DNA of 63,622 nucleotides, the filler included, from Pelomyxa schiedti (lineage: Eukaryota; Protista; Evosea): assembly GCA_020536535.1 (NCBI GenBank). It is 14 parts of 14 records of this genome, joined end to end, with 100 filler letters (N's around TTAATTAATTAA, not from the genome) between each part and the next. Parts side by side here need not be neighbours in the genome. Positions count along the whole stretch, not along the records: positions 3,709 to 20,020 come from JAHLWZ010000083.1; 13 more parts are not named here. One strand, given 5' to 3'. The position numbers were made by a program, and so were the translations under genes. Positions 3,709 to 20,020 of this stretch are shown one piece after another (the first letter of the stretch is position 1; every line of letters begins with the position of its first letter). A model generated the notes under the pieces. It was given only the letters and a program-made list of their open reading frames with translations, was not told where the DNA came from and did no database searches.

Positions 3709-4063
3709 ATCACAAATAAACCTCATAGAGATCAATAGAAAGTAAAAGCAAATCACAACCTTACATCCATTTGTTGTTAACTGCTCTAAAGTCCCACCAG
3801 ATGTGAAGTTGTGCCCATGGAGAGAGGGCGCCAGGAAACAAAGCTCAGCAGCACATTTTTCCTTCTGTACTGCATCAGCCAACTTCATTGTGTGACATTC
3901 CTCCAAAGTAAACACACATTGGCCCAAGAAGGCATCCAAAGACGCCAGGCCTTCAGAGTAACCCTGCTGGATACAAAGTCAGACTGCATTACAAAAGGGC
4001 AGGTTTGAGACCTTTCCGTAAACCATTGAGTTATAGTTCCAAAGGATATTCTTTTCCCAATCT

Positions 4064-5201
4064 TCATTTGCTTTTGCCTTGTGAACGAGTTAAACAAGGC
4101 TTTACAGAGAAAGCTACCCTCTTCACTTCGGCAATGAGTGGTAAAATTTTGGCATGATCAGTAATTACACCATCCATCACAGCATAGCCAACTATACCAA
4201 GCTGATATTGTGTGGGTAAGCCAGTGACATCAGTGCGCAGATCACCATCAAGTAATCCCGCAGTAATTGCTTCAGAAAGCTTCATAACATCACTTGATTC
4301 CTGATCCCGTCCAGCCTGCCTGAGCATCTTCCGGGAGATAGTTTGTTTGAAGTGAGCGATGTTATAGTCATCTGTCTCATTGTGGTTTGGTTTCAAAGCA
4401 GTAGAAGGTAAAGCTCGCACAACCACAAATTCTGGAATTGTTCTAAGATGAGTAAGATGACATGCAAAACCACAGATAAAGAAAAACCGCAGTGGATCTG
4501 TTTCTGCATGTAGCTTGGGTTTTTTATCTTCCTCTTCAATCTGGGCTTGAAACGATGCCAGAACTAATGTTTTCCGACTTTCAACAGCTGGAGGAGGCTG
4601 TGTCAAGAGGTGTAGAGATGCGGCACTTGAAGCAGGAAAAGGTTGTGAAAGAGATGAACTTGAGGTCGTAGAGGACCATTGCCCATTCTGGTGCAAATTC
4701 ATCTCAGCAAGTGATTGTTCCTCAATAGAGAGGTACTCTGGGTGAGTGAGTCTGAGATTTGCTTATGAAAAGTGAGAAACACCATAAATCTTTGATTTAA
4801 CCACCCATTCTTCATTTTGTTTCTGACCGGCGCCGGTCAGCACCACCACAGCGGTCATGGGGGTTGTTTTGCAAAAGTGGGTATCACTTCCACTATTGGT
4901 TCTCTGACCGGCGCCGGTCAAACACTTTGTTGTTTTCGCCACATTTTTCCATTTTTAATGAGCAAAACACAAACAACACACCTCCTGCATGGCACCGCGA
5001 TACACCGTCATAGACTCCATCGATGTCTTGTGCTCTGAGAGTGATTGGATCTGTTCCGTGAACTGTCGCCTTCCACCTCTCCAACGCCAGCCGCTGGAGA
5101 CAAGCACTGCCCGCACGCAACTTGACCCAAATTTCAGAATCACTCTGCCATCCGAACTTCCGAATGTCTTCCTCTCTGTCTGTTATTCGCCCCGCATCCA
5201 A
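4064..5201 (-). CDS. Spliced hypothetical protein inside the dispersed duplication (copy 1)
   Basis: ORF 5201-4982 (DAGRITDREEDIRKFGWQSDSEIW...HAG) joins ORF 4761-4064 in frame through a GT-AG intron at 4981-4762 (HAG|ANLRLTHPEYLSIEEQSLAEMNLHQ). No recognisable domain; 5' end unresolved. Confidence 0.45.
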
Positions 5202-5537
5202 GTCCCGATCGTAATTTCTGAAAACTGGGGTTTTGATGGGGTGTCAGTGTATTTGGGGGTGGTCATTTTACCAATGAGGCACCCCGCTTTGTGGTTTTCC
5301 CACCCTTGGTGCGCGTGTGTGCGGCGATTGTTTTGGAGTTTGGTGGCAAGTTTTTCTTCGAGGGAGGCACACCTTGGGCCATTTCTAAGAGTCGAATTCT
5401 TGCCATGAACACCGATGAGCCGATGCTGTGTAGCTCTGCTGGTGTTGGGTCATGAAAATATCGACTAGCAGTTGCCCTCATCACCTCGGTCTGCTGATTC
5501 TCCACCTTGGTTTTCAGGGTCTCCTTCACTCCTTGCA
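4321..5537. repeat. Dispersed ~1.2-kb duplication, copy 1 (copy 2 at 18790-20020)
   Basis: Co-linear, same orientation, roughly 90-95% identical by eye, from TGAGCATCTTCCGGGAGATAG to ...CACTCCTTGCA. Confidence 0.95.
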
Positions 5538-5889
5538 CTGCATTTTGCGTTGCCACTTTTCTGTGCAGCAATTAGCTTCGTACTTACCCCAAAGATACAT
5601 ACAGGTTTATTTTCTCCTTCTCAGTCCTTTTGCTCTTCTCCCTCTTGTGTTTGCTTGAAATTTCACTATCCAACGACAACCTAGCTTTGATTGGTTTCAT
5701 TTTGTTTTTGTGTTTTGCGTTGTGTTACTTTTCTTGTTTATATGCACGGTTTTCTAGTTTTATTTGATATTGATAAAGTGTATCTGAATTGCGTGTGGCT
5801 TTGGCATTTTCCCTGCTTTTATTATTATTATTCTGTGAATGTAATTGACTGCCTACTCACTTTCTTTACACTAAAACTAACCAGAAACA

Positions 5890-7950
5890 AAACTTGCTCC
5901 GGGTGTGCCCTGAAGTTATGGCAACCAGTGGGTCACCACTGACACTGTTCTCACAATTGTGTGATCACATTCAGTTTGGTGGAAATACAGCAGGCAAGGG
6001 AGAAGCTTCATTCAAAACGCAAGTTGGAGCAAGATATGTACTTGGTCAACAAGTTGCAGGGGTTTGCTTTACATGTTACAAGTTTAAAGGTTTCCTTGTT
6101 TTTTTTTCTTCTCGTTTATTTGTTGTTTTTTCTTCTTCTCGGTTATTATGGTAGAACCTCTCATTTTTTTCTAGTCTTGCTTAAATGAAGTCTTAGGAAA
6201 GACAGTGTGTAGAGCCGCATTTGATTGGGCATGAGCGCCTTAGTAACTTACATTTATTTATCACTGGGGCTAGGTCTTTTACTACATTATAATCACTACC
6301 CTATAAACTGACACACCAATAGAGATGCCACTGACTATCGCTGCTACAGTCACTCCTGTGAATCTGACAAGCAGAAGACTGTTGTTGAGTGGATTACCTC
6401 CCGTGTCATTGAGTCCCATTTGTGTGAGCCCATGGTTGGGAAGAAAGGTATTGATCGTGATGGTAATCAGAGGGTTATACTGCCGGCATCTGAGACACTT
6501 ATTGATCTATTTTCAAGACTTGTGGATGACCTCCTTGATGAGAAAATGCCAGCAGAGAGAGTACGATTTAATTGCTCCTATTTTCTCTAAGATGCCATCA
6601 GATTCCCAGCCTTCGGACTTTCTATAGAGTTCTACAGAAGCAGTTTCCTTTCATTATTCATGAGCGAATTACCACCCAGACTCAGTGCTTGATCTGTGAT
6701 CAGCTGTGACGCTCAAAGGCAGATGCACTGCGTGAGACTGATTCTGAGCAACTTGCTTCAGTACAAAAGGCTATTGATGAGCACACTAAGCTTCACCTGG
6801 ATGAACGGCACCATCAGAGCCGGCAGTATGCTGAGTCTCATAACTTTCCAACAGAGTTGGGTGCTGTGTGTATGGCTGCCAAGCAGCATCTTATGCTTCC
6901 TCACTTTCGTGGAGGAACTACAGTATCACAAGGGTGCCCCAAATATTCTTTGCATATTATGGGTATCCAGGATTGCTGTACTGTGGAATGCTGGTTGCAA
7001 AACGCTGGGTGCAGTCTGTTGAAATTGGCTTTTTGCTTCCAGGACATGGGCATGGCCTGCAAGATCAGCTGTTCAGCTCTCTGCATGTTCCACTCCACAC
7101 ACAAGATGCCCTTACAGTGCCTGCATTTCTGAAACTTTGCGAGTATGCTTATCAGCACAAGCCAATCACTCTGTTTGTGCTGGATGTTGTCTGGGACTGG
7201 CATGGTTACTTCTCTCCCTTCTTACAGGGGTCTCAATGGCAATGCCTTGAGGACTGCTTTGGATTTTTGATCTCCATTGGAGTTCCCTCAGGTTCCACCC
7301 ACGAATCTGTAGTGGTGCAGTCAAGAAGATTTAACTCACGAGAACAATGGTCAGAATACGGCGCTGATTTGTTTCCTCAGGGAATTCCAACAGGGGTGCC
7401 CAACACTGTGCCTGCTGATTTTTTGGTTTTCAAGTCCACTGAAATTGGATCCAAAGCACTTCCTCCTTCATTCCCTGCATTTGGTTCAGGCTCTTCAATA
7501 GTGTGTATTTCTGCTTTATACTGTTCTGCCTCTTCATTATTACAATCCTAAACCTAAGTTAATAACCACAACACATGGAGTCATTGTTCTGTGTAATGAG
7601 TTACTTTTTCCTTACTATCATTTAGTGGGGTGTAGAGAACTTCTGGAGCACAACTGGCTTTATTCTGGCAAATGAAAGGGTGACTGTACCACCATTGACT
7701 CCCCATGCCTCAGCATTTCTTCAAAATATCCACCAAGTGCAAACATGAAGACTGTGTTCCTTTGCCAAGCATGATGTGGTTGTACTTTTTGATGGAGGTA
7801 TAGCTGAAGTACATAGAGTAAAGAGCCACGAGAATCATACATACCTACTTGTGAAGTTCTGGATTTCAGCTGCATCACAAGGTTGGTTCTTTTCCAAAAA
7901 TCCTTCTGTTGTTGTGTTGCTGGAAACACTTGTTTTAAGGCCCAGGTGAA
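5890..7950 (+). mobile_element. Decayed Sola/DUF7869-like DNA transposase (stops, frameshifts, internal deletion)
   Basis: Ordered motifs across frames: CSHNCVITFSLVEIQQAREKLHSKRKLEQDMYL; KTVCRAAFDWA*; W..EPM..ILP; FPFIIHERITTQTQCLICDQL*; HTKLHLDERH; LMLPHF; LHIMG; EIGFLLPGHGHGLQDQLFS. The order matches my recall of Sola-type transposases (VCxxxF, CxxC, H, ER, PHF, FLxxGHxxxxxDxxF). Confidence 0.68.
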
Positions 7951-8900
7951 ACCTCTTTTTCTTGTTCTTATCCTCTTGTCTATTATAATGTTGCCACCAA
8001 GTAAGTTTTTTTCCCAGTCTATGTAACAGATCCTCAGACTTCATCACACTCAGCATCAGCTTGTTCTAACTATGACTAGATATGTCCTTTGGCATGGTGC
8101 CAAAACTGACACCTTCACACAAAGGCATACATTAAAACAAGTGCCACGTAACACTATTGCACGTTGCTGTTGCAACTTGCTGCCACCAGTACCACGCTAT
8201 GAAGAACACCAGTGGCCACCTTGCTTTTAACACAACTGTTTGTTTTGAACACCAAGGTTTTCCACAAAAAATGACACTCAACTGAACAAAAATAGCAAGG
8301 ATTTTTACACAATATCAACCACAGAGTGGCAATTTGACTGTAATTTGGTGCTTTTTGGGTGTTATTTCCTGGGTTCTGTAAACCTGATTCATTGGCAAAA
8401 GCCTGACTAGGTTGGCAGGAGCTTAATTGCAGAGAGACGAGAGCCACCCCACACAGCACCGTTGTTTGTTTACAGATGAGTGAATTGTCCAGAGCCTCCA
8501 ATTTTTGTTGTTGCTTGCTGTTGTGTTTGAAGGATGAACGACAACAACGCGATCGGATCTTCAGCAATGCTGATGATACGATAAAAACACCGGCACCCAT
8601 CGTCATTGTTGGTGCATCTAACATCCATGAGAATAAGAAATAAACAAAAACACCAGGTAATATGGATCTGCTGTAACAGGGCAACAATTGTTCGGTGGTT
8701 GCAAATGGAGCTCCTTAGGCTTTCTTTTTGCTGAGTCTTCTCAAGTCCATCAAACCACTAACTAGGTATCGAAGAGGCAACGTGCGCACGGGACCAATTC
8801 CCCTTTGTCGCGCATCACCGCGCAACCGCGGCACCACTCAGTCCCGGAACACGAGGCACAACCGCATCATCAAACTTTCAGGTCTTTTGGCGCTCGTTTG

Positions 8901-10031
8901 ATGGCGGACCCAAAAGCAGTTGAAACCAAGGACAACACGGACGCGCGCGGCCAGTTCATTGCCCTCGGCGTCGGTGTAATTGTGGGACGTTGCGGCCGCG
9001 ACATCGCCAGCGCTGTGTCGGCCCTCACGCCCCCTTTGTTGTCGTGTATCGGCCGAGAGTGGGTCGTGTTCCCTGCCAGGCTCGTCGTCGTGGAGATGGC
9101 GTATCAATCATTCCACAAAGCCAAGGAGTTTGTCAGGTTCAGCGTGTCACCGACTCTGGGCCTCGTGCGGCATCCCACAATGATCAATTTCGGAATCAAC
9201 AACAAAGTCACATACTGCTACGGGTGGGTGGGTCCCCAGTCATCAGGCGACAGGTTTGCCCTGACGATGGCCCAGGCTGCCGACGACTCCAGGGAAGCAC
9301 AGAAGTTGGTCGTGATCGACACCAGCGGGCGCAGTGAGGACCTGAGGCTGTGCAACTGGCTGAGCCTGTCTGGGCCCTGGTGCAACAACAGGAGGTGGAT
9401 TGCAGCCACAAAAAATATACCTCTGACATCGTCACTGACACTGTGGAACCTTGATGGAGTTGAGAGTGGCAGTGTCTCCAAAGTGGAGGACATTGATCTG
9501 CTGTGGAGGGTGTCCCGGGCCGCGTTTTGTGATGACAGTTCACTGGTTGTTTCACAGCCGGAGGGTGGAATCATGGTGATTGACCTCGAGGCCACATTTT
9601 CAGAGAGCAGGCTGGTTTGGACCCCGGTGCAAATCGCTGATTTTGATCGGATGTACCTCAACCACATTATCTGCTGGAATGGGGTGTTGTATGCCTTGTT
9701 GTATGGCACAGATGGGAGCACCTGGGTGCAATGCCTGACAACTGGTGGGCGCACGAAATTGAGTGGAGACTATACTGTGCCACTTGGTGGGCCCTATGTT
9801 GCCGTGTGTACCTCCAGAGAGGAGCGTGGGGTTGATGTATGCAGCATTGTAGAGCCTACCAAGGTGCGCGTACACCACAGGGCACAGAATGGAATCGAGA
9901 GGTTCGTGCTTGGGCGGGAGATGGTGTTCTGGGACAGTGCCCAAACCACCACCGAGGTGATTGATGCTGTGACTGGCTTTGTTGTCTTCAAAATGGCCGT
10001 CGCTTGGTGCTTTGTGGCAAGTGTTTCATGA
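8901..10031 (+). CDS. Orphan-superfamily protein (ARxQFxAL-RCG N-terminus, beta-rich C-terminus), intronless
   Basis: MADPK..DARGQFIALGVGVIVGRCGR..IGREWVV..., ending EVIDAVTGFVVFKM. Close paralogue at 13268-14413 with the same tttgATGGC start context. Confidence 0.85.
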   Translation: MADPKAVETKDNTDARGQFIALGVGVIVGRCGRDIASAVSALTPPLLSCIGREWVVFPARLVVVEMAYQSFHKAKEFVRFSVSPTLGLVRHPTMINFGINNKVTYCYGWVGPQSSGDRFALTMAQAADDSREAQKLVVIDTSGRSEDLRLCNWLSLSGPWCNNRRWIAATKNIPLTSSLTLWNLDGVESGSVSKVEDIDLLWRVSRAAFCDDSSLVVSQPEGGIMVIDLEATFSESRLVWTPVQIADFDRMYLNHIICWNGVLYALLYGTDGSTWVQCLTTGGRTKLSGDYTVPLGGPYVAVCTSREERGVDVCSIVEPTKVRVHHRAQNGIERFVLGREMVFWDSAQTTTEVIDAVTGFVVFKMAVAWCFVASVS

Positions 10032-10428
10032 AGCAAAGAGACGAGACATTCACAAACTGAATTTTCTTGGGCAAAATACAATTGTATTGTAAAAAAGCTA
10101 ACGCAGGAATTTCCGATAAACCACAGTTTTCAACTAACTCGTCGTGTCGCCGGCACACAATCAGGGGCGCGGTTCCCAGTGCCTCGTGTTGATTGGATCA
10201 TAGAACACAGGAACAGATTCAGGGTGTTGTGTTTCGACAAACAAAAAGGAAAGATTTTGGGGTACCAATCTTTTTTATTGGAATGAAGTTGGTGTGGTGG
10301 GAACTGGACTCTCCTCTGGAAGTGACAGACAGCTCTCCTCTCTGTTGGCGGAATTAGTCTACGTGTGTATGGACACAGCGATAGCGGAAAGTGGGAAAAA
10401 GCGCTGTTGTTGATGTGTGGCACAGCAC

Positions 10429-11180
10429 GCTCAGGCGGAGGACGGCACGGAATCGCGGAGAGACGAGAGCCACCCCACACAGCACCGTGCTTGTTGAAGG
10501 CACGGTGGCAACACCCACAACGCGAACCACGGCATCCACCACCCGAGGGGTGTGTGTGTGTTGGCCTGCTGTTGCTGCTGATGATATGGATTATTACGAT
10601 CTCAAGTGATGATTCTGGAAAACGGGTTAAGAATCACTTAAAATAAAAGATGTCACACCTGTTTGTTGTGCTCCTCATGTGACAGAGGTGCCTCTCATGG
10701 CAGAGGCGGGCACATCATTCCCGCTCAGGCGGAGGACGGCACGGAATCGCGGAGAGACGAGAGCCACCCCACACAGCACCGCACTTGTTGAAGGCACGGT
10801 GGACGGCAGTGGCAACACCCACAACGCGAACCACGGCATCCGCCCACCCGAGTGGGGTGTGTGTGTTGGCCTGTTGTTGCTGCTGCTGGCATGGATGATT
10901 ACGATCTCAAGTGATGCTGCTCGGCTCTGGAATAAACACGTTAAGACTGATTTAAAATAAAAGATGTCACACCTGGTTTGTTGTGCTGCTCATGTGACAG
11001 AGGTGACGTGTGGCACATCATTCCCGCTCAGGCGGAGGATGGCACGGAATCGCGGAGAGACGAGAGCCACCCCACACAGCACCGCGCTTGTTGAAGGCAC
11101 GGTGGACGGTGGTGGCAACACCCACAACGCGAACCACGGCATCCACCCCCCCGAGGGTGGGGTGTGTGTGTGTGTGTGTG
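10429..11180. repeat. Tandem repeat, ~300-bp unit (2.5 copies), with a dispersed partial copy at 8434-8640
   Basis: Units start with GCTCAGGCGGAGG at 10429, 10723 and 11026 (periods 294 and 303). The core GAGACGAGAGCCACCCCACACAGCACCG also occurs at 8434-8461. Confidence 0.92.
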
Positions 11181-11939
11181 TTGGCCTCCACATGTTGCTG
11201 CTTGTTGTTGTGTTTTAACGCGTCGGATCTTCTTCAGCCACCCGCCATTGTCGTTGACGGTGCATCATCTAGACACAATCGAGAATAAGAAAATAAGGCA
11301 TTTAACTTGATTAGATCTTGCCGTTGGTGTTACTCCATGAACAGTTCTCCTTGAAACACAACTTGGGTGTTGCAACGCGGCAAACAGTGCAAGAAAACAC
11401 CTGACCCGAAATAAGAACAAGACACAACAACAGCACCGTCACTGTGTCGCGAGGGTGACAGGCACCAATGAGAAAAAAAAACAAAGTTGTGAATGCATAC
11501 ACGTTTGACCGGGTCACATGTTGTTGGTTGTGTAGATCTTGCCTTGGTTTTATTTTTTAATGATTGTTATGTGTTCGGGTCGCATGCTGTTGGTTGCCGA
11601 AATGTGTGATCTTGGTTTTACTATTTTTTTATGATTATAATTTTGTGTTCTTTGGGGGTTTATAAGTCCGCCAATTGGTTCTTAACAGATAAATTATCTG
11701 CAACTGCGATTTTCCCAAAAACCAATTGCACCAACCCGATCACTTCCACATTGTTCAGTGGTTTAGTGCGCGCGCTTATGGCTTGTGTTGCCGCTGTTGT
11801 CGTTGTTTTTTGAGTTTGTGGCAAGTGATTGTTGTGGGTGTTGTTGGAGAACGATAACAACAAGAAAATTACATGGTCACAGATGTTGCCTCTTAAAAGA
11901 TCTGTGAAGCGTTTATAAACATCATCAGGGTCAAAAGGA

Positions 11940-13190
11940 TCACCACAACAGTGAGGACTGTTGGTTGATGCAAAAATCTCCTCCCCCAGAAGGCAAAACA
12001 TCAAACGAGATCACCACAACACCAGACTCAATCACCAGAATCTTCCTGTCACTGGTTTGCACTGCAAACAAAAGCCCCCTGCCGCAAACAACCTGATCAA
12101 AGGTGTCCCCACAGTTTGTGCACCTCAGTGGTTGGCGCGTGTCGTTGCAGTCCCACAGCTGGTAAGAGTTGTCCCATGCCCTCCCAACACAGAACACGCT
12201 GTCGTCCAACTGTGACAAGTCGGAGCACCTGGCCGAAAGCACTCTGGCAGTCCCTGTGTCAGCTTCCACCTGAAACACAAAATTGCCATACGACTTCACA
12301 ATGAAAATCACAGCGCCATCAGTCTTCTTCCGCCTCAAAACCAGTGCTGCATCAGGTGATTGGAGGGAAGTACCAGGACCAAAGGAGTCCTGCCTACTCT
12401 CTGTGGATGTCTGAATCAAAGCAGTGAACTTCTGGGATTCGTATGTCTTGAGCACATCAAAAAGTGTGAATGAAATGGTGGTGGTTTCGCAACAACTCGA
12501 AGTAAGCAGCACCTCATCGGGAACAGTGTGGTTGCAGAACGTCCTCATTGTGCGACTCACACTCTCAGGCAGCAGCATAGATACCTTCGCATCAGGCATG
12601 GTTCTCTCCTTTGGTATCCCTTGCGAAGTATTGAGTCTGGTGATGGTGATGCTTGCTCCATTTGTTCTTGCCCTCCAGCCCAGTGTCACCCACCACTTGG
12701 CGTTGAGTGCTCCGCAACAGTCGAGCCCCCCGTGATTTCTAACATGGCGCTCATTCCGCCCCAGAGAGTCAACAGCAGCACTCTCCGCCTTGTGCAGGCA
12801 CAAGTAAGTGCACCCACTTCCGGGCTGCTGTTTCTTCAGCACTGTGACACCTGGTGCTACCCACCCCTTGGCGTCAGAGACGACCACGTCGCGCGTGATC
12901 ATCCCCAGGGTGGTCAGTGACACGTCAAATGCAACTGACCACGTCACGATGCTGTAACGGTCAGCAGCTCCTCCCCCTCCCCCGCTCCTTTCGTCGATCA
13001 CCAGGGCGAACTTTCTCGAGGTGGACACGACCCAGTCGCGCCAGATCTGGTGGGCCAGAGGCGCGACGCAGCACACGTGGCGCGCCGGGCTGTGTGCCCC
13101 GCAGCGCGAGTGTGACGAGGTCATCAGGGCAACGAACTGGTCCGTGGCACTGACCGCCGTCGGTGTCACCTGCTGGACCGTCGCTGCCAT
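11940..13190 (-). CDS. Orphan-superfamily protein, divergent subfamily, intronless
   Basis: MAATVQQ..SATDQFVALMTSSHSRCGAHSPARHVCCVAPLAHQIWRDWVV..., ending ILVIESGVVVISFDV. Confidence 0.85.
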   Translation of the reverse strand: MAATVQQVTPTAVSATDQFVALMTSSHSRCGAHSPARHVCCVAPLAHQIWRDWVVSTSRKFALVIDERSGGGGGAADRYSIVTWSVAFDVSLTTLGMITRDVVVSDAKGWVAPGVTVLKKQQPGSGCTYLCLHKAESAAVDSLGRNERHVRNHGGLDCCGALNAKWWVTLGWRARTNGASITITRLNTSQGIPKERTMPDAKVSMLLPESVSRTMRTFCNHTVPDEVLLTSSCCETTTISFTLFDVLKTYESQKFTALIQTSTESRQDSFGPGTSLQSPDAALVLRRKKTDGAVIFIVKSYGNFVFQVEADTGTARVLSARCSDLSQLDDSVFCVGRAWDNSYQLWDCNDTRQPLRCTNCGDTFDQVVCGRGLLFAVQTSDRKILVIESGVVVISFDVLPSGGGDFCINQQSSLLW

Positions 13191-13267
13191 GTTTAAGAAA
13201 AAAAAAAAGCGATTGTTGATTTCTGAGAATCTGCTCAGGGGAAACAGGGGTTTAAAAGGAAGGTTTG
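13191..13267. promoter_or_regulatory. Putative 77-bp bidirectional promoter between divergent superfamily genes
   Basis: ATGs at 13190 (-) and 13268 (+) point away from each other; the spacer contains a poly-A tract. Confidence 0.5.
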
Positions 13268-14413
13268 ATGGCAGACCCAAAAGAAGTTGACAACACGGAC
13301 GCTCGGGACCAGTTCATTGCCCTCGGCGTCGGAGTAATTGTGGGACGTTGCGGCCGCGACATCACCAGCGCTGTGTCGGCCCTCACACCCCCTTTGTTGT
13401 CGTGGATCGGCCGAGAATGGATCGTGTTCCCTGCCAGGCTCGTCGTCGTGCAGTTTGCGTCTCATTCATTCGGCAAAGCCAAGGAGTTCGTGAGGTTCAG
13501 CGTGTCACCGACGCTGGGCCTCGTGGGGCATCCCACAATGATCAATTTCAGAATCAACAACAAAGTCACAAACTTCTACGGGTGGGTGGGTCCCCAGTCA
13601 TCAGGCGACAGGTTCGCCCTGACGATGTCCCAGGTTGCTTACCACACCATGATGGTCGTGATCGACACCAGTGGGCGCAGTGAGGACCTGAGGCTGTGTA
13701 ACTGGCTGAGCCTGTCCGTGCCATGGTGCCACAACAGGAGGTGGCTTGTATCCGCGAAAATAGCAAGATGCTCTCTGACATCATCACTGACACTGTGGAA
13801 CCTCGATGGAGTTGAGAGTGGCAGCGTCGCCAAAGTGGAGGGCATTGCTACGCCGTGGCTGGTGTTCTGGGCCGGGTTTGGTGGTGATGACAGTTCACTG
13901 GTTGTACCACAGTTGCAGGGCGTCATGGTCATCGACTTGGAGGCAACGTTTTCACAGAGCAGGCTGGTTTGGAGCACAGTGCCAATCGCTGCAGTTGATG
14001 GGATGCGCATACTCCAGCGCATAATCTTATGGAACGAAGTGCTGTATGCCTTGCTGTCCGGGGGAGATGGAAGCACTTGGGTGCAGTGCCTGACAACTGG
14101 TGTGAGCACGAAGTTGAGTCAAGGAAAGACAAAGCGACTTGGTGGGCCCTATGTTGCTGTGTGTACCTCCAGCAAAGAGGAGTGTGGAGTAGATGTGTAC
14201 AGCGTTCTGGAGCCAACCAAGGTGCGCTCAAGACACAGGGCACACAGTGGGATTGAGAGGTTAGTGACTGGGCGGGAGATGGTGTTCCGGGACCATGGAT
14301 TTTGTGAGCCACCACCAGGACCAAACACCATTGAGGTTGTTGATGCTGTGACTGGCTTTGTTATCTTCAAAATGGTAGTCGTCACTGACTACTTTGTGTC
14401 AAGTGTGTCATGA
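13268..14413 (+). CDS. Orphan-superfamily protein, close paralogue of 8901-10031
   Basis: DARDQFIALGVGVIVGRCGR..., ending EVVDAVTGFVIFKM; co-linear with 8901-10031. Confidence 0.87.
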   Translation: MADPKEVDNTDARDQFIALGVGVIVGRCGRDITSAVSALTPPLLSWIGREWIVFPARLVVVQFASHSFGKAKEFVRFSVSPTLGLVGHPTMINFRINNKVTNFYGWVGPQSSGDRFALTMSQVAYHTMMVVIDTSGRSEDLRLCNWLSLSVPWCHNRRWLVSAKIARCSLTSSLTLWNLDGVESGSVAKVEGIATPWLVFWAGFGGDDSSLVVPQLQGVMVIDLEATFSQSRLVWSTVPIAAVDGMRILQRIILWNEVLYALLSGGDGSTWVQCLTTGVSTKLSQGKTKRLGGPYVAVCTSSKEECGVDVYSVLEPTKVRSRHRAHSGIERLVTGREMVFRDHGFCEPPPGPNTIEVVDAVTGFVIFKMVVVTDYFVSSVS

Positions 14414-14425
14414 CAGAGAAAAGAG

Positions 14426-14811
14426 ATGTTTCAATGGAATTTGGAGTGGCTGTTGGTGGTCAGTTGGTTCGGGGATGGGATGCCAGTGTGGAACTTTGAT
14501 CACATCCTCGAGAGTGGTGAGGTGGCAGAGGCGAAAGGCGTTGCACTGAGCATTGCAGAATGGCTGTTGAGGGCGATTCACTGGTCATCGCCCGGGATGG
14601 TGAGTTGTCACAACAGGAGTTGATAAGGATGGCTGTTCTCGATTCAGTTTGGTCAGGAACTCGTTGTGAGGCAGCCAGGGTCACAAATGACAGTGTCACT
14701 GCAGTTCTCACTCCTGCATCCACCTGCCGTACACACCAGCATGCTGCCTCTGGCTATGTACTCTTATTGTCTGCAGCTGCTGTACCCCTAATCGAAAACA
14801 AAACTGTCTGA
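14426..14811 (+). pseudogene. Internal relic of the orphan superfamily (frameshifted, lacks both termini)
   Basis: WNLEWL...MPVWNFDHILESGEVAEAKGVA aligns to RRWL...LTLWNLDGVESGSVAKVEGIA of 13268-14413; continues in another frame as GDSLVIA. Confidence 0.5.
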
Positions 14812-14827
14812 AAACCAGATTGGAAAG

Positions 14828-17077
14828 TTATTCTTTATTCCCAAGAACCAATACCTTCATTAGGTCAGTGAACACAGACACCCTTCCAGAGGCCACATCG
14901 ACGACTGTGATTGGGCACACGTGGTGCACCCCTGGTACCAGTGCAACAAGCTCAATGTCAAAGGCACATGCTTGTCCTGGGAACAGAGGGAATGGCCCCC
15001 CAACCAGCCCACACACCCCCTGTATCACCATGCACCCTGTGGGTTGTTGTTGTGGCTGTGGTTGTTGTTGCTGTGATCGGGGGTTGATGGCTGTGTCTGT
15101 GAAGTTGATGTGAACTCTCATTTCGGCAGAGGATTTGTTGGTAAGGGAGCAGTGGATTGTGAAGGGTACCTCAACGTGTACTTTGGGAGGTGATGTTGAT
15201 ATTGCCGGCGATTCTGATGATGTTCCGGCACCTTCGGAATCATCATCACCATCTTGTGGTGTGTTGCCGGTGTTTGTGTTGATGAGTTGCATTGTGAGTT
15301 CCAGGGTTTCGGAATCATCACTGAATCTCCTTTTGAGAAGGGTGGTGTAGAGCCGGCCGAGGTCACCAAAGAGCCCCCGCCACACAACGCGGACACAGCC
15401 TACGTCCCGGCCTTGCCGGATCTGCCAATTGTGAGTTGTGGGAAAGGTGGGGAACAGTACAAACATTGAATGTGACTGGGTCCCGCGGCATCAACGAGAA
15501 TAGAAAGCTGGACGCCTGACCGGGGGCCATCCACGATATGGTGGACAGAAGCGGAGTTGTTAGTTTGTTGGCCGGGGATGTTGAGGTGGCTGGGGATGTG
15601 AGAGCAGTTGCCGGGTTTGGTGCCTGTGTGGGTATTGCTTTGACTTGTGGTGAGGGACTTATTTGCTCGGAAATGTACCACTCTGTTGGTTCAAAAGACA
15701 CGTGGTCAATGAAAAGATTGGACGGGCACTCATTCGTAACCTTAGCTTCTACATACAATCCATGAGGTTGCTCAACAACCTAGAAACAGTTAAGGGAATG
15801 AGGTGAAAAGAGTGAATGCTAACCTTGGAAATTATTGAAACCGCACTAGACACTGGGAACTTGAACATACGGGAAAAGGATCTTTCCTCCTCACTTGAAG
15901 TTCGCGTGTATGCTACAGTACATAAAAGTGTGTGCTCTCCAGTGTCCTCAAGTAGCCGGTGAACTAGAACGTTTATTGACTCTACACATTGTTAGCCGAT
16001 TGCACATAGAGCTTTGAGTTCTGCAAACCTCCTTTGGAGAGTTTAGGTACGGCGCAGTCTCTTGTTTCAGCGAGCTTGTACGAAAGAGATTGAGCAAGTA
16101 ATTGCGGGGAACCAGCTCCCATACGGCCGAGATTTGGGACTTTTGATTCCCCATATATAAGTTCAATTCTACATATTATTAGAAGAGTAAGAAAGACCAA
16201 CCAAATTCCGCTGCACTAACCTATACCAAACGTTGAACAGGTCAATCCCCGACGAATTGAGCAAGTTCACATAGCACCTTAGCATCTCCCCAACGTGGAT
16301 GTTCTTGAATGCCTTTGGTATCTCGAGTGACCCCAGGCCGAACCCATCGCCCACAGTCCCCAAGCAACTACTAGCCGGCGGCGGCGCCGCCTCCCAGCAC
16401 TGCGATAGGCTCAGGCTCCCCACGCTGCTCCCAGTCAGCCCGTTGGTTCCCCCGCTCATCACCTCGCTCCCGCTGCCCCCAACCCCCCCGCTGCTCGCCG
16501 CACTCTCCCCCGTGCCCCCGCTGCCTCCCCCTCCCCCTGCCCCGCCCGTGTCCCTCTCCCTCTCCCGCTGGCTCCCCATGCTGGGCCTCCCCGACTCTGA
16601 CAGTGCGTCGGGCTCCTCTGCGTCGGCGTCGGCCTCGCGGGTCTCTTCCGGAGTGAGGACGCCGCCGGTCTTGGTGGCGCCCCGCTCGGCGGAGCTGGGC
16701 TCCGCGGTCGCGGCGGCGGCGCCGGGAGGGGGAGTCTGGGCGCAGGGACAGGTGCAAGGGGTGAACAGGGCGGTGGCGGGGAGGACGGCGGAGGCCACGA
16801 AGCACGCGTTGGCCATCCTCATCACCCGCACGCGTATCGCCTGCGTGTTGGCCGCCGCTGCCGCCGCTGCGTCGCCGCCCGTGGCTCCCCCGCCGGTTGG
16901 TGGCTGCTGCTGCTGCTGCTGCTGCTGGGGCTGAGACGGGGAGGACGACGAGGACGAGGAGGAGATGGAGGACACGCCAGGGGAGAGGGCCTGCGGCGGC
17001 GGGGACGTGGACGTGGACACCGAGGGCGGCTGCGGCGACCGCGACGAACTGCCTCCGACCGACGCTGCGGACATCAA
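14828..17077 (-). CDS. TRAPPC13: Trafficking protein particle complex subunit 13 (multi-exon)
   Basis: AIRVRVMRMAN; LEIPKAFKNIHVGEMLRCYVNLLNSS; LEDTGEHTLLCTVAYT..ERSFSRMFKFPV; LFIDHVSFEP; FDIELVALVPGVHHV. These follow TRAPPC13 motif order, with long low-complexity inserts. Confidence 0.82.
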
Positions 17078-17339
17078 AAATCAAAAAGTAGGGATGAGTC
17101 GAGGGACGAGTCAGTGGGGGTTCTCATTCGAAGGAAGGGCTCTCTTTACGGATAGTGTCGTGAGGTGCCGTGCCTCGTTGGGTCACGCAACTGACTTGCC
17201 ACAGAGCTCTCCACAATCTACTGGAGGTATAAACAGGTTTATTACTAAACAACTTGTGGCTGTGACATAATTTTGGGACCCAAAAGAGGAAAAAGTACCC
17301 TCGCCCATCCATAGTTCAAACACTCACAGTGATAGATTC

Positions 17340-18259
17340 CTAAGAATCTTCTTCATTGTCATCTTCATCATCAGGATCAGTGAGGAGACTGGGAAAGAGT
17401 GCTGCAAATTGTGGTTGCTTCCTGTTCCAATCCACAGAGCCCTTGGCCAGGTTTCTCTTCTCTGTGTCTGTTGTTTCAATTGATCCAACTGTGTGACTCT
17501 GTTCTAGCTGCAATGGTTGTTGTTTGGTTGATTAATTCGGTGTATTGGTAACAAGATTCATGCCATAAATGAGAGCAGTCCAAGTAGTATACTGCGGAAA
17601 TTGTGTTTGAGGGTCAAAAAAAACAGGAAAGAGGAAATAAGTACCTAGAAACGGACCATGAAGGTACCCATGATTCTGGGTGAACTGGAGTCAATAAAGT
17701 GTGGTTTTAATTCAGTGATGAATATCAGATAGCTTAACATACAGTCACTCATTGACAAGCATAGTTTCTTGTCAGTGGCAAATCTTCCTGATGGGGTCTT
17801 CATAATAATGCCTACAAGGTGGGTAATGAAACAAATTACCACAAATACTATATACACACTTGGTGGAGCGAGAGGATATGTAGGTGGAAAACGCACAATA
17901 CCCCAATATATTCCACCCTGGTACACTGTATCCATTGGTCCCAGTAACACGTAGTGCCATTCTGGGGGTACAAAAATCTCAAAAAAGAAAACAAAACAAT
18001 TGTGTCCCAAACAAAGTGACGGCCACAACTGACCTAGGATGTTTTCAGGGTGTGGCCTCGTCAGTACGTGGTCAATTGGTGACTGCAGTATCTCCTGCCA
18101 CTCTTTCTTCAGCCTTTTCTTGTTTTGTAGGCCAACAAAAAAAAAAAAAAAAAAGCCTTTCAACACAAAGAGTACAGACAGTCCCCTCAATTTCACGGAA
18201 AGCATGCATACCACACAGTCCACCGTCGGTGTCGCCGTCGCCCCTGTGCTCGCTGCCAT
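17340..18259 (-). CDS. UBC6: Ubiquitin-conjugating enzyme E2, Ubc6/UBE2J type (multi-exon)
   Basis: [99 protein letters not shown]. The last intron (17563-17508) is GC-AG. Confidence 0.92.
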
Positions 18260-18558
18260 ACTGCGCCTACCTCTGTGAAGTTCGATCTATCTATGGGCAG
18301 ATGCCAATTGTTCTGATTGGATCAGTGAGTGACCCCTGCCTGAGGGTGGCGGACTCGAAGTGTGCAGCCCAATGTACTTTAAGTTGGGCCAATTTTTGGT
18401 GTGACTCAGATGTCAAGGTAGTTCGGAGTCAGGACACCTGCTTCCGTGCTTCCGAGACNNNNNNNNNNNNNNNNNNNNNNNNNNNNNNNNNNNNNNNNNN
18501 NNNNNNNNNNNNNNNNNNNNNNNNNNNNNNNNNNNNNNNNNNNNNNNNNNNNNNNNNN

Positions 18559-19685
18559 GCATGACGAATATTGCTAGCTTTCCACCATTCATCAGTAGAA
18601 AGCTTAAGAAAGGTAAATATATGTGCAGAGTGAGGAGGTTTTCAACCTTGAGAGCCTCAAGATGAACAGAAACACTTTCCACAGTCCACAGTGACTTTGG
18701 TTTGGTAGGACTTTTTGGTGCAAAGAAATCCGGTGCCAAGGCATTAATCTTGACCATACACTCCAAGTTCCTTTCTGGGAAGGAGCTGCTGAGCATCTTC
18801 CGGGAGATAGTTTGTTTGAAGTGAGCTATGTTATAGTCATCTGTCTCATTGTGGTTTGGTTTCAAAGCAGTAGAAGGTAGAGCTCGCACAACCACAAATT
18901 CTGGAATTGTTCTAAGGTGAGTAAGATGGCATGCAAAACCACAGATAAAGAAAAACCGCAGTGGATCTGTTTCTGCATGTAGCTTGGGTTTTTTATCTTC
19001 CTCTTCAATCTGGGCTTGAAACGATGCCAGAACTAATGTTTTCCGGCTTTCAACAGCTGGAGGAGGTTGTGTCAAGAGGTGTACAGATGCGGCACTTGAA
19101 GCAGGAAGAGGTTGTGAAAGAGATGAACTTGAGGTCGTGCTTGTGCAGGTCGTAGAGGACCATTGCCCATTCTGGTGCGAATTCATCTCGGCAAGTGATT
19201 GTTCCTCAATAGAGAGGTACTCCGGGTGAGTGAGTCTGAGATTTGCTTATGAAAAGTGAGAAACACCATAAATCTTTGATTTAACCACCCATTCTTCATT
19301 TTGTTTCTGACCGGCGCCGGTCAGCACCACCACAGCGGTCATGGGGGTTGTTTTGCAAAAGTGGGTATCACTTCCACTATTGGTTCTCTGACCGGCGCCG
19401 GTCGAACACTTTGTTGTTTTCACCACATTTTTCCATTTTTCATTAGCAAAACACAACCAACACACCTCCTGCATGGCACCGCGATATACCGTCATAGACT
19501 CCATCGATGTCTTGTGCTCTGAGAGTGATTGGATCTGTTCCGTGAACTGTCGCCTTCCACCTCTCCTCCGCAAGCCCCTGGAGACAAGCACTGCCCGCAC
19601 GCAACTTGACCCATATTTCAGAATCACTCTGCCATCCGAACTCCCGAATGTCTTCCTCTCTGTCTGTTATTCGCTCCGCATCCAA
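18559..19685 (-). CDS. Spliced hypothetical protein inside the dispersed duplication (copy 2, 3' end lost in gap)
   Basis: Near-identical to 4064-5201 up to TISRKML, then continues with a different sequence (SSSFPERNLECMVKIN...). Confidence 0.45.
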
Positions 19686-20020
19686 GTCCCGATCGTAATT
19701 TCAGAAAATTGGGGTTTTGACGGGGTGTCAGTGGATTTGGGGGTGGTCATTTTACCAATGAGGCACTGCACTTTGTGGTTTTCCCACCCTTGGTGCGCGT
19801 GTGTGCGGCGATTGTTTTGGAGTTTGGTGGCAAGTTTTTTGTGTTTTTCTTCGAGGGAGGCCCATTTCTAAGAGTCGAATTCTTGCCATGAACACTGATG
19901 AGCCGATGCTGTGTAGCTCTGCTGGCGTTGGGTCATGAAAATATCGAATAACAGTTGCCCTCATCACCTCGGTCTGCTGATTCTCCACCTTGGTTTTCAG
20001 GGTCTCCTTCACTCCTTGCA
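18790..20020. repeat. Dispersed ~1.2-kb duplication, copy 2
   Basis: Matches 4321-5537; truncated by the spacer at 20021. Confidence 0.95.

Follow-up and report, generated by a model that had tools for sequence, protein, structure and literature searches.

The window examined in this study, a stretch of 63,622 nucleotides from the anaerobic amoeba Pelomyxa schiedti (GCA_020536535.1), contains members of a gene family that is real, previously undescribed and apparently lineage-specific. The analysis centered on one contig, JAHLWZ010000083.1 (16,312 bp), the whole of which occupies window positions 3709-20020; coordinates given without a contig name are window positions, and family copies were checked within this piece. 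Structure prediction indicates that the encoded proteins are soluble, about 370-420 amino acids long, and composed of an N-terminal strand, a helix-loop-helix module and a seven-bladed WD40-like beta-propeller. The members most likely act as binding proteins of modular build that share a docking module. In the reading favored here, to which we assign a probability of roughly 0.5, every member would attach to one common partner or complex through the conserved module and the likewise conserved first blade, while different ligands would be bound by the variable blades of the propeller, such that the family would work as an arsenal of adaptors or receptors.

An orphan family of predicted beta-propeller proteins

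Three full-length family genes, here called A, B and C, were identified on the contig by listing its open reading frames (ORFs) and by scanning all six frames with a profile of the family, and each of them is an intact, intronless, single ORF. Gene A (8901-10031, plus strand; deposited protein P0002) encodes 376 amino acids in one uninterrupted frame and matches profile positions 1-371 (E = 4e-149). Gene C (13268-14413, plus strand; 381 amino acids; profile E = 9e-145) is a paralog of A with 72% protein identity and 81% DNA identity, and the DNA similarity between the two ends approximately 5-13 bp beyond the coding sequence (8896-10041 compared to 13263-14426). The closest relatives of gene A lie on other contigs (P0158 at 83% and P0003 at 76%) and not beside it, the neighboring gene C reaching 72%. 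Gene B (13190-11940, minus strand; 416 amino acids) reaches only E = 0.004 against A in pairwise BLAST, yet it matches the profile over its full length (positions 1-373, E = 3e-68), a combination which, as judged from sequence comparison, places it in a divergent subfamily. The family copies that an earlier note on this DNA had listed for positions 3709-20020 were all found in place by the ORFs and the profile scan.

The first search for relatives returned 29 proteins, all of them from P. schiedti. The earlier note had suggested counting copies genome-wide, and when a profile built from these 29 sequences was searched against 1.84 billion cluster representatives, 376 proteins matched at E<=1e-3, of which 185 passed E<=1e-10 and 57 passed E<=1e-30, numbers far above chance. 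The best 150 of the 376 proteins were listed and the source organism was looked up for 48, every one of which (48/48) came from P. schiedti; most of the 48 are named "hypothetical protein", while others are named after a neighboring gene merged into the model. No Pfam domain was found in the family part of these 48, and when the word-indexed search was repeated with a 76-sequence profile, only further P. schiedti proteins were gained. The 157 proteins retrieved correspond to 183 family units, with two or more units in 32 of them. The P. schiedti genome has 19,876 predicted proteins and an average of 7.43 introns per gene (PMC8887013); at 185-376 sequence clusters or more, the family therefore amounts to approximately 1-2% of the predicted proteins. 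Genes A, B and C, as well as most units on another family contig (L004, described below), are single ORFs, and this intronless state is unusual given the average intron number of the genome. The family is not mentioned in the genome paper (PMC8887013), and a literature search on Pelomyxa combined with the features of the family returned no match mentioning Pelomyxa. Additionally, pattern-limited scans with conserved peptides found no relatives in JGI metagenomes, IMG/VR viral contigs or GTDB prokaryotic genomes. So far the family has thus been seen in P. schiedti only, and provisionally so, since the databases may lack other Archamoebae.

The earlier note had described an orphan superfamily with a beta-rich, propeller-like body of about 350 amino acids, and the predicted structure agrees with this description. 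The AlphaFold2 model of gene A, built from the 29-sequence alignment, has a mean predicted local distance difference test (pLDDT) score of 87.4 and a predicted template modeling (pTM) score of 0.83. At the N-terminus the model contains a strand (residues 9-12) followed by three helices (15-29, 38-41 and 44-55). The helix-loop-helix module spans residues 15-58 (8943-9074, plus strand; ARGQFIALGVGVIVGRCG...SALTPPLLSCIGREWVVFP), and the propeller occupies residues 59-376 (9075-10028, plus strand), where DSSP assigned 28 strands between residues 60 and 375, mostly with pLDDT 85-98, forming seven four-stranded blades. The N-terminal strand 9-12 probably pairs with the last strand of the last blade and would thereby close the propeller. 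When the module was modeled alone, the same helices were obtained (pLDDT 80.7, pTM 0.54). Foldseek comparison of the gene A model to the PDB returned beta-propellers only, more than 500 of them at E<=1e-3, the best with E = 4e-9 to 2e-7, probability 1.0 and template modeling (TM) scores of 0.4-0.5; these matches included a designed eight-bladed propeller, the PALB2 WD40 domain, G-beta and amine dehydrogenase subunits. At the sequence level, no Pfam match was found at E<=10 in 29 full-length members, and this includes WD40 (PF00400), Kelch, RCC1 and the other propeller families. The family is an orphan in sequence and ordinary in fold. The idea that the hydrophobic helix 1 is a transmembrane segment or a signal peptide was rejected on account of polar residues in divergent members (e.g., QFAALLASSHPRCG). 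In gene A, the 19 residues QFIALGVGVIVGRCGRDIA average approximately 1.1 on the Kyte-Doolittle scale (calculated by hand), which is under the usual transmembrane threshold of 1.6, and 19-residue windows elsewhere reach 1.6 in 28 of 76 members.

The N-terminal module and its candidate functions

The part of these proteins that is most conserved is the N-terminal helical module, as the earlier note had proposed. The motif A[RT]xQF[IV]AL...RCG...W, which is close to the A[RKT]xQ[FV]xAL and RCG...W pattern given in that note, is present in A, B and C, and the corresponding regular expression matches 27 of the 29 first-round relatives; in gene B the motif reads ATDQFVAL...SRCGAHSPAR...IWRDWVV, and the consensus across the family is ARxQFVAL-x5-8-RCG-xx-SPAR-x-L-x-P-x-L-x4-G-R-x-W-V-V. 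The C-terminal strand motif was likewise recovered in all three genes (VIDAVTGFVVFKM in A and C, VIESGVVVISF in B); its strict regular expression matches 15 of the 29 relatives, and the consensus of 76 sequences shows it as IxVxDAxSG. Among 76 diverse members, mean conservation is 2.39 bits per column in the module (residues 15-58), compared to 0.9-1.4 bits per column in the individual propeller segments, and insertions and deletions are concentrated in the propeller loops. The most conserved positions include A15, Q18, F19, R30, C31, G32, S37 and W54 of the module; those of blade 1 include S83, T85 and G87 within SVSPTLGLV, with S83 and G87 invariant. The ratio of nonsynonymous to synonymous divergence (dN/dS) between A and C is 0.57 overall, with a dN of 0.037 and a dN/dS of 0.23 in codons 1-40 versus a dN of 0.16-0.26 and a dN/dS of 0.4-0.85 in the later blades. 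Fourfold degenerate sites also differ less toward the 5' end (14% in codons 1-200 versus 28% beyond; Fisher p = 0.04), and this lower synonymous divergence hints at a mosaic history of the two genes, or at gene conversion or recombination in the 5' half.

Several points weigh against a docking function shared by all members. The docking role of the module is a proposal drawn from its conservation. In addition, the body is not freely variable, since several propeller motifs are themselves strongly conserved (SVSPTLGLV, NRRW, IDLEAT, CLTTG and PIGGPYF). In the model the module sits between blade 1 and the N-terminal strand that would close the propeller, and it may therefore be a mere structural cap. 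Its pLDDT in the full-length model is only 55-69. Finally, an exact-sequence look-up of P0002 for transcript evidence of gene A matched the genome contig only.

There are several potential explanations other than a dedicated docking module of this kind. It is conceivable, if unlikely on the evidence assembled here, that a ubiquitin ligase, of the cullin-RING or another type, uses these proteins as its substrate receptors; the module would then be a new or diverged equivalent of the F-box, H-box or BC-box that binds Skp1, DDB1 or Elongin C, and the propellers would select substrates such as prey, endosymbiont or viral proteins. The architecture, in which a seven-bladed propeller comes after a conserved helical module at the N-terminus, is what such receptors would be expected to have, and the stronger constraint on the module than on the body also fits. 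Among the structural matches, Fbw7 in complex with Skp1 (2ovr_B) ranked seventh (E = 3e-8, 363 aligned columns); however, its TM score of 0.42 is no better than those of G-beta or the amine dehydrogenases. The best matches in a library of viral models were BTB/POZ-WD-repeat paralogs of mimi-, moumou- and megaviruses (E = 6e-9 to 5e-6, TM 0.43-0.51, 8-12% identity), which point in the same direction through the mimivirus BTB-WD paralog family. Nematode and plant F-box and BTB receptor families typically show massive lineage-specific expansion accompanied by pseudogenes, and the similar pattern here can be counted in favor of this explanation.

The earlier note had likened the family to F-box and BTB substrate adaptors, and of this comparison the architectural half held (a conserved helical module on a propeller), whereas the specific relation to F-box or BTB domains did not. 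By any test run, the module is no F-box, BTB or SOCS box. In hmmscan searches of 29 full-length members and 111 N-termini, no F-box (PF00646/PF12937), F-box-like, BTB (PF00651) or SOCS_box domain was found at E<=10. A 111-sequence profile of the module had no match at E<=10 among 177,635 PDB sequences, while a 40-residue Skp2 F-box (identical to residues 11-50 of 1fs1_A), used with the same tool as a positive control, retrieved Fbw7, FBXL2, KDM2A/B, beta-TrCP, FBXL5, FBXL17, FBXW8 and FBXO31. Direct alignment of the module profile to the Skp2 F-box with hhalign gave a probability of 0.05%, and Foldseek of the isolated module against the PDB returned no F-box protein (best E = 1.6), which is a weak test given the short query and its pTM of 0.54. 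LPxE followed by two hydrophobic residues did not occur within the first 80 residues of any of the 76 members, and the place equivalent to the F-box LPxE, which opens helix 1 and contacts Skp1, reads A-R-x-Q-F. Likewise, WDxR on consecutive blades (the DWD hallmark of DCAF proteins) was absent, with a single WDxR in 3 of 76 members and never two. The module is a helix-loop-helix of approximately 45 amino acids, compared to about 95 for the BTB fold. By eye, the tail of the module (P-x-L-L-x-L-I-G-R-x-W-V) loosely recalls the end of the F-box (L-L-x-h-x-x-V-C-K-R-W), a resemblance rather than a result. Membership in the F-box, BTB and SOCS families was rejected on these negatives (Pfam, PDB profile search, hhalign, Foldseek and the LPxE and WDxR patterns), and because every membership test was negative, a role in ubiquitin ligases is an architectural analogy only.

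Domain fusions were also considered as a clue to function and rejected. Long deposited models that contain family units carry extra domains, including RING/TRAF, RING/B-box, DUSP plus UBL, EutB/EutC, phosphodiesterase, cupin, GNAT, eIF4E, SAP and Macro. Two of these models, P0078 and P0049, were mapped to their contigs, and the last exon of each corresponds to the family part, connected to the rest via a predicted intron of 82-134 bp; in P0049 this part is a separate ORF with its own ATG, and in P0078 it is a copy with a frame-shifted 5' end. The fusions are thus merges of neighboring genes, and those with unrelated enzymes (EutBC, eIF4E, Macro, GNAT and cupin) are as many as those of ubiquitin type. 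As annotation artifacts, the RING/TRAF, RING/B-box and DUSP fusions are therefore without functional weight and speak against the ligase explanation rather than for it.

Comparison to known systems shows the same mixture of likeness and difference. The F-box/WD40 receptors of the Skp1-cullin-F-box (SCF) ligases (Fbw7, Cdc4 and beta-TrCP) resemble the Pelomyxa family in having an N-terminal helical module of approximately 45 residues and then a seven- or eight-bladed WD40-type propeller, and some F-box families in other lineages also expand lineage-specifically. The Pelomyxa proteins, however, lack a detectable F-box, LPxE or WD40 sequence signature, and their module is, in the model, inserted between the closing strand and blade 1 rather than forming a free N-terminal domain on a linker. 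DCAF receptors of cullin-RING ligase 4 (CRL4), such as DDB2 and CSA, carry a helix-loop-helix (the H-box) before a seven-bladed WD40 propeller, as known from the DDB1-DDB2 and DDB1-CSA structures. The predicted Pelomyxa helix-loop-helix likewise stands directly N-terminal to a seven-bladed propeller, but the family lacks the WDxR hallmark, and DDB2 and CSA are outside the top 50 Foldseek matches. The BTB/POZ-WD family of Mimiviridae (mimivirus R739, R786, L35 and L76 and their moumouvirus and megavirus homologs), which provided the best structural matches in the viral library, is similarly multi-copy, found in amoeba-associated genomes, and built from an N-terminal adaptor-type domain and an atypical propeller. 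Its adaptor is, in contrast, a BTB fold of about 100 amino acids that is absent from the Pelomyxa family, the identity is 8-12%, and the pattern-limited scan of IMG/VR viral contigs found no sequence relative of the Pelomyxa family. Finally, the F-box and MATH-BTB families of Caenorhabditis and plants share with the Pelomyxa family their hundreds of copies, tandem arrays, many pseudogenes, conserved adaptor end and diverging recognition end. In those families the domains are true F-box or BTB domains for which binding to Skp1 or Cul3 has been demonstrated, whereas the conserved end of the Pelomyxa proteins is an unclassified module.

The possibility already raised among the counterpoints, that the module is a cap or clasp of the propeller, would make the members binding or scaffold proteins that act on their own, such as cytosolic receptors or lectin-like proteins, and that have no docking partner in common, and it too must be considered doubtful. 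In the model the module is tethered to the propeller at both ends, by strand 9-12 before it and by blade 1 after it; the adjoining blade-1 motif SVSPTLGLV is conserved along with the module, and no known adaptor domain is detectable, all of which would be expected of a cap. A structural cap is, however, rarely more conserved than core strands, and here the module exceeds the propeller segments (2.39 versus 0.9-1.4 bits per column). Moreover, the best-conserved positions include polar or charged residues (R16, Q18, R30, C31 and S37) that point to an exposed functional surface, and the low pLDDT of the module in the full-length model, which counted above against a docking function, here speaks against tight packing on the propeller.

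Selfish or foreign DNA (mobile-element cargo, retrocopies, or genes from giant viruses or prokaryotic endosymbionts, self-spreading and without a cellular function) is a very improbable source of the family, even though its genes are intronless in an intron-rich genome (7.43 per gene), number in the hundreds with many pseudogenized, lie in the case of gene A 1.3 kb downstream of a DUF7869 ORF, and have as their best viral structural matches the paralog families of amoeba-infecting giant viruses, because the similarity between A and C ends at the coding edges without terminal repeats or a poly-A tract, the DUF7869 region is unmatched on L004, no relative was found in the pattern-limited scans of IMG/VR, GTDB and JGI metagenomes, all 48 homologs looked up came from the amoeba itself, the viral similarity is at the level of fold only (9-12% identity, TM 0.4-0.5), and purifying selection at the N-terminus (dN/dS 0.23) indicates function at the protein level.

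If the module does serve as a docking box for a common partner, as in the favored reading, the family would represent a new modular receptor class that arose and expanded within one protist lineage. It would also be an independent case of the design seen in the F-box, BTB and DCAF families, with a conserved adaptor end and a variable recognition end, and it would offer a route to study how Pelomyxa handles prey, endosymbionts and viruses. A bolder version, which we regard as improbable, holds that the helix-loop-helix is a new docking box, equivalent to the F-box, H-box or BC-box but unrelated to them in sequence, that links several hundred propellers to one ligase or effector complex; an endosymbiont-bearing anaerobic amoeba would then possess a private, rapidly evolving surveillance or degradation arsenal making up 1-2% of its proteome. 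Even without any docking role, this undescribed family accounts for about 1-2% of the predicted proteome.

Turnover of copies and deposited gene models

In tandem arrays in the window and on L004, intact copies stand beside truncated, frameshifted and fragmentary ones. Birth-and-death evolution, which the earlier note had proposed, is well supported, the copies multiplying by tandem and segmental duplication. On L004, a stretch of 21.6 kb contains at least nine family units in tandem, most of them single ORFs; a frameshift interrupts one unit, several others are incomplete, and a further head-to-head pair is present. Some frameshifts could be errors, the assembly having been made from amplified single-cell DNA. 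A segmental duplication connects the two contigs, with window positions 10350-13049 (a tandem repeat plus gene B) corresponding to L004 14686-17474 at 76-93% identity. Within it, gene B and a 5'-truncated L004 copy share 93% DNA identity, and this B-type copy begins at codon 48, right after an in-frame stop.

Downstream of gene C, a decayed mid-propeller fragment (14429-14551, plus strand) matches profile positions 154-196 (E = 1.3e-3), and from there up to approximately position 14800 the sequence contains stops, frame changes and frame-shifted, non-significant remnants. Upstream of gene A, a short segment (8765-8803, plus strand) reads GIEEATCARDQFP, the start of the N-terminal motif, and weakly matches profile positions 9-20 (E = 0.49). 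It lies approximately 100 bp upstream of the ATG of gene A in another frame and resembles, by eye, the 5' end of the unit at L004:17553; tentatively, it is probably what remains of a further family copy's 5' end.

The tandem repeat between genes A and B (10428-11171) was identified with Tandem Repeats Finder as a 303-bp unit in 2.5 copies with 86% matches. It is kept at 76-91% on L004 (14686-15929), beside the other B-type copy, and it had no Rfam or Pfam match. Genes B and C are divergent, with 77 bp (13191-13267) between their start codons. A head-to-head pair of a B-type and an A/C-type gene recurs on the two contigs with a spacer of approximately 77-80 bp (L004 ~17475-17552 in the second case), and the recurrent spacer contains an A-run and GATTTC(T/A)GAGAATC. 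The spacer may be a shared bidirectional promoter.

Deposited models of family genes are often wrong, being merged with unrelated neighbors such as TRAF-like, TRIM-like or EutBC genes, joined in tandem or truncated. In P0001, gene C is spliced onto the downstream relic (13268-14811), and P0047 represents gene B without the last 49 residues of its ORF. Tandem units are fused in deposited models into proteins of 600-1200 amino acids. These mis-modeled genes matter to any user of the P. schiedti proteome.

Other features of the contig

The ORF upstream of gene A mentioned above (6868-7551, plus strand) matches Pfam DUF7869 (E = 8.7e-13), a domain associated with transposases. A multi-exon TRAPPC13 gene (14828-17077, minus strand), with its C-terminal, middle and N-terminal domains in separate ORFs, includes a very GC-rich exon (68% GC) with low-complexity sequence of Ala, Gly and Gln; ordinary genes on the contig are thus spliced, unlike those of the family. 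A search with Rfam identified no RNA genes in the piece 3709-20020. An exon of a ubiquitin-conjugating enzyme (17645-18259, minus strand; Pfam UQ_con, E = 1.2e-6) is a neighbor only, with nothing to connect it to the family. Near both ends of the contig lies a direct repeat of approximately 1.2 kb (4320-5537 and 18789-20020; 94% identity), both copies of which carry similar ORFs without a Pfam match (e.g., 4064-4702 and 18413-19186, minus strand). An assembly gap, present as 100 N (18459-18558), falls inside the right-hand repeat copy. This end repeat is probably a dispersed repeat or mobile element.

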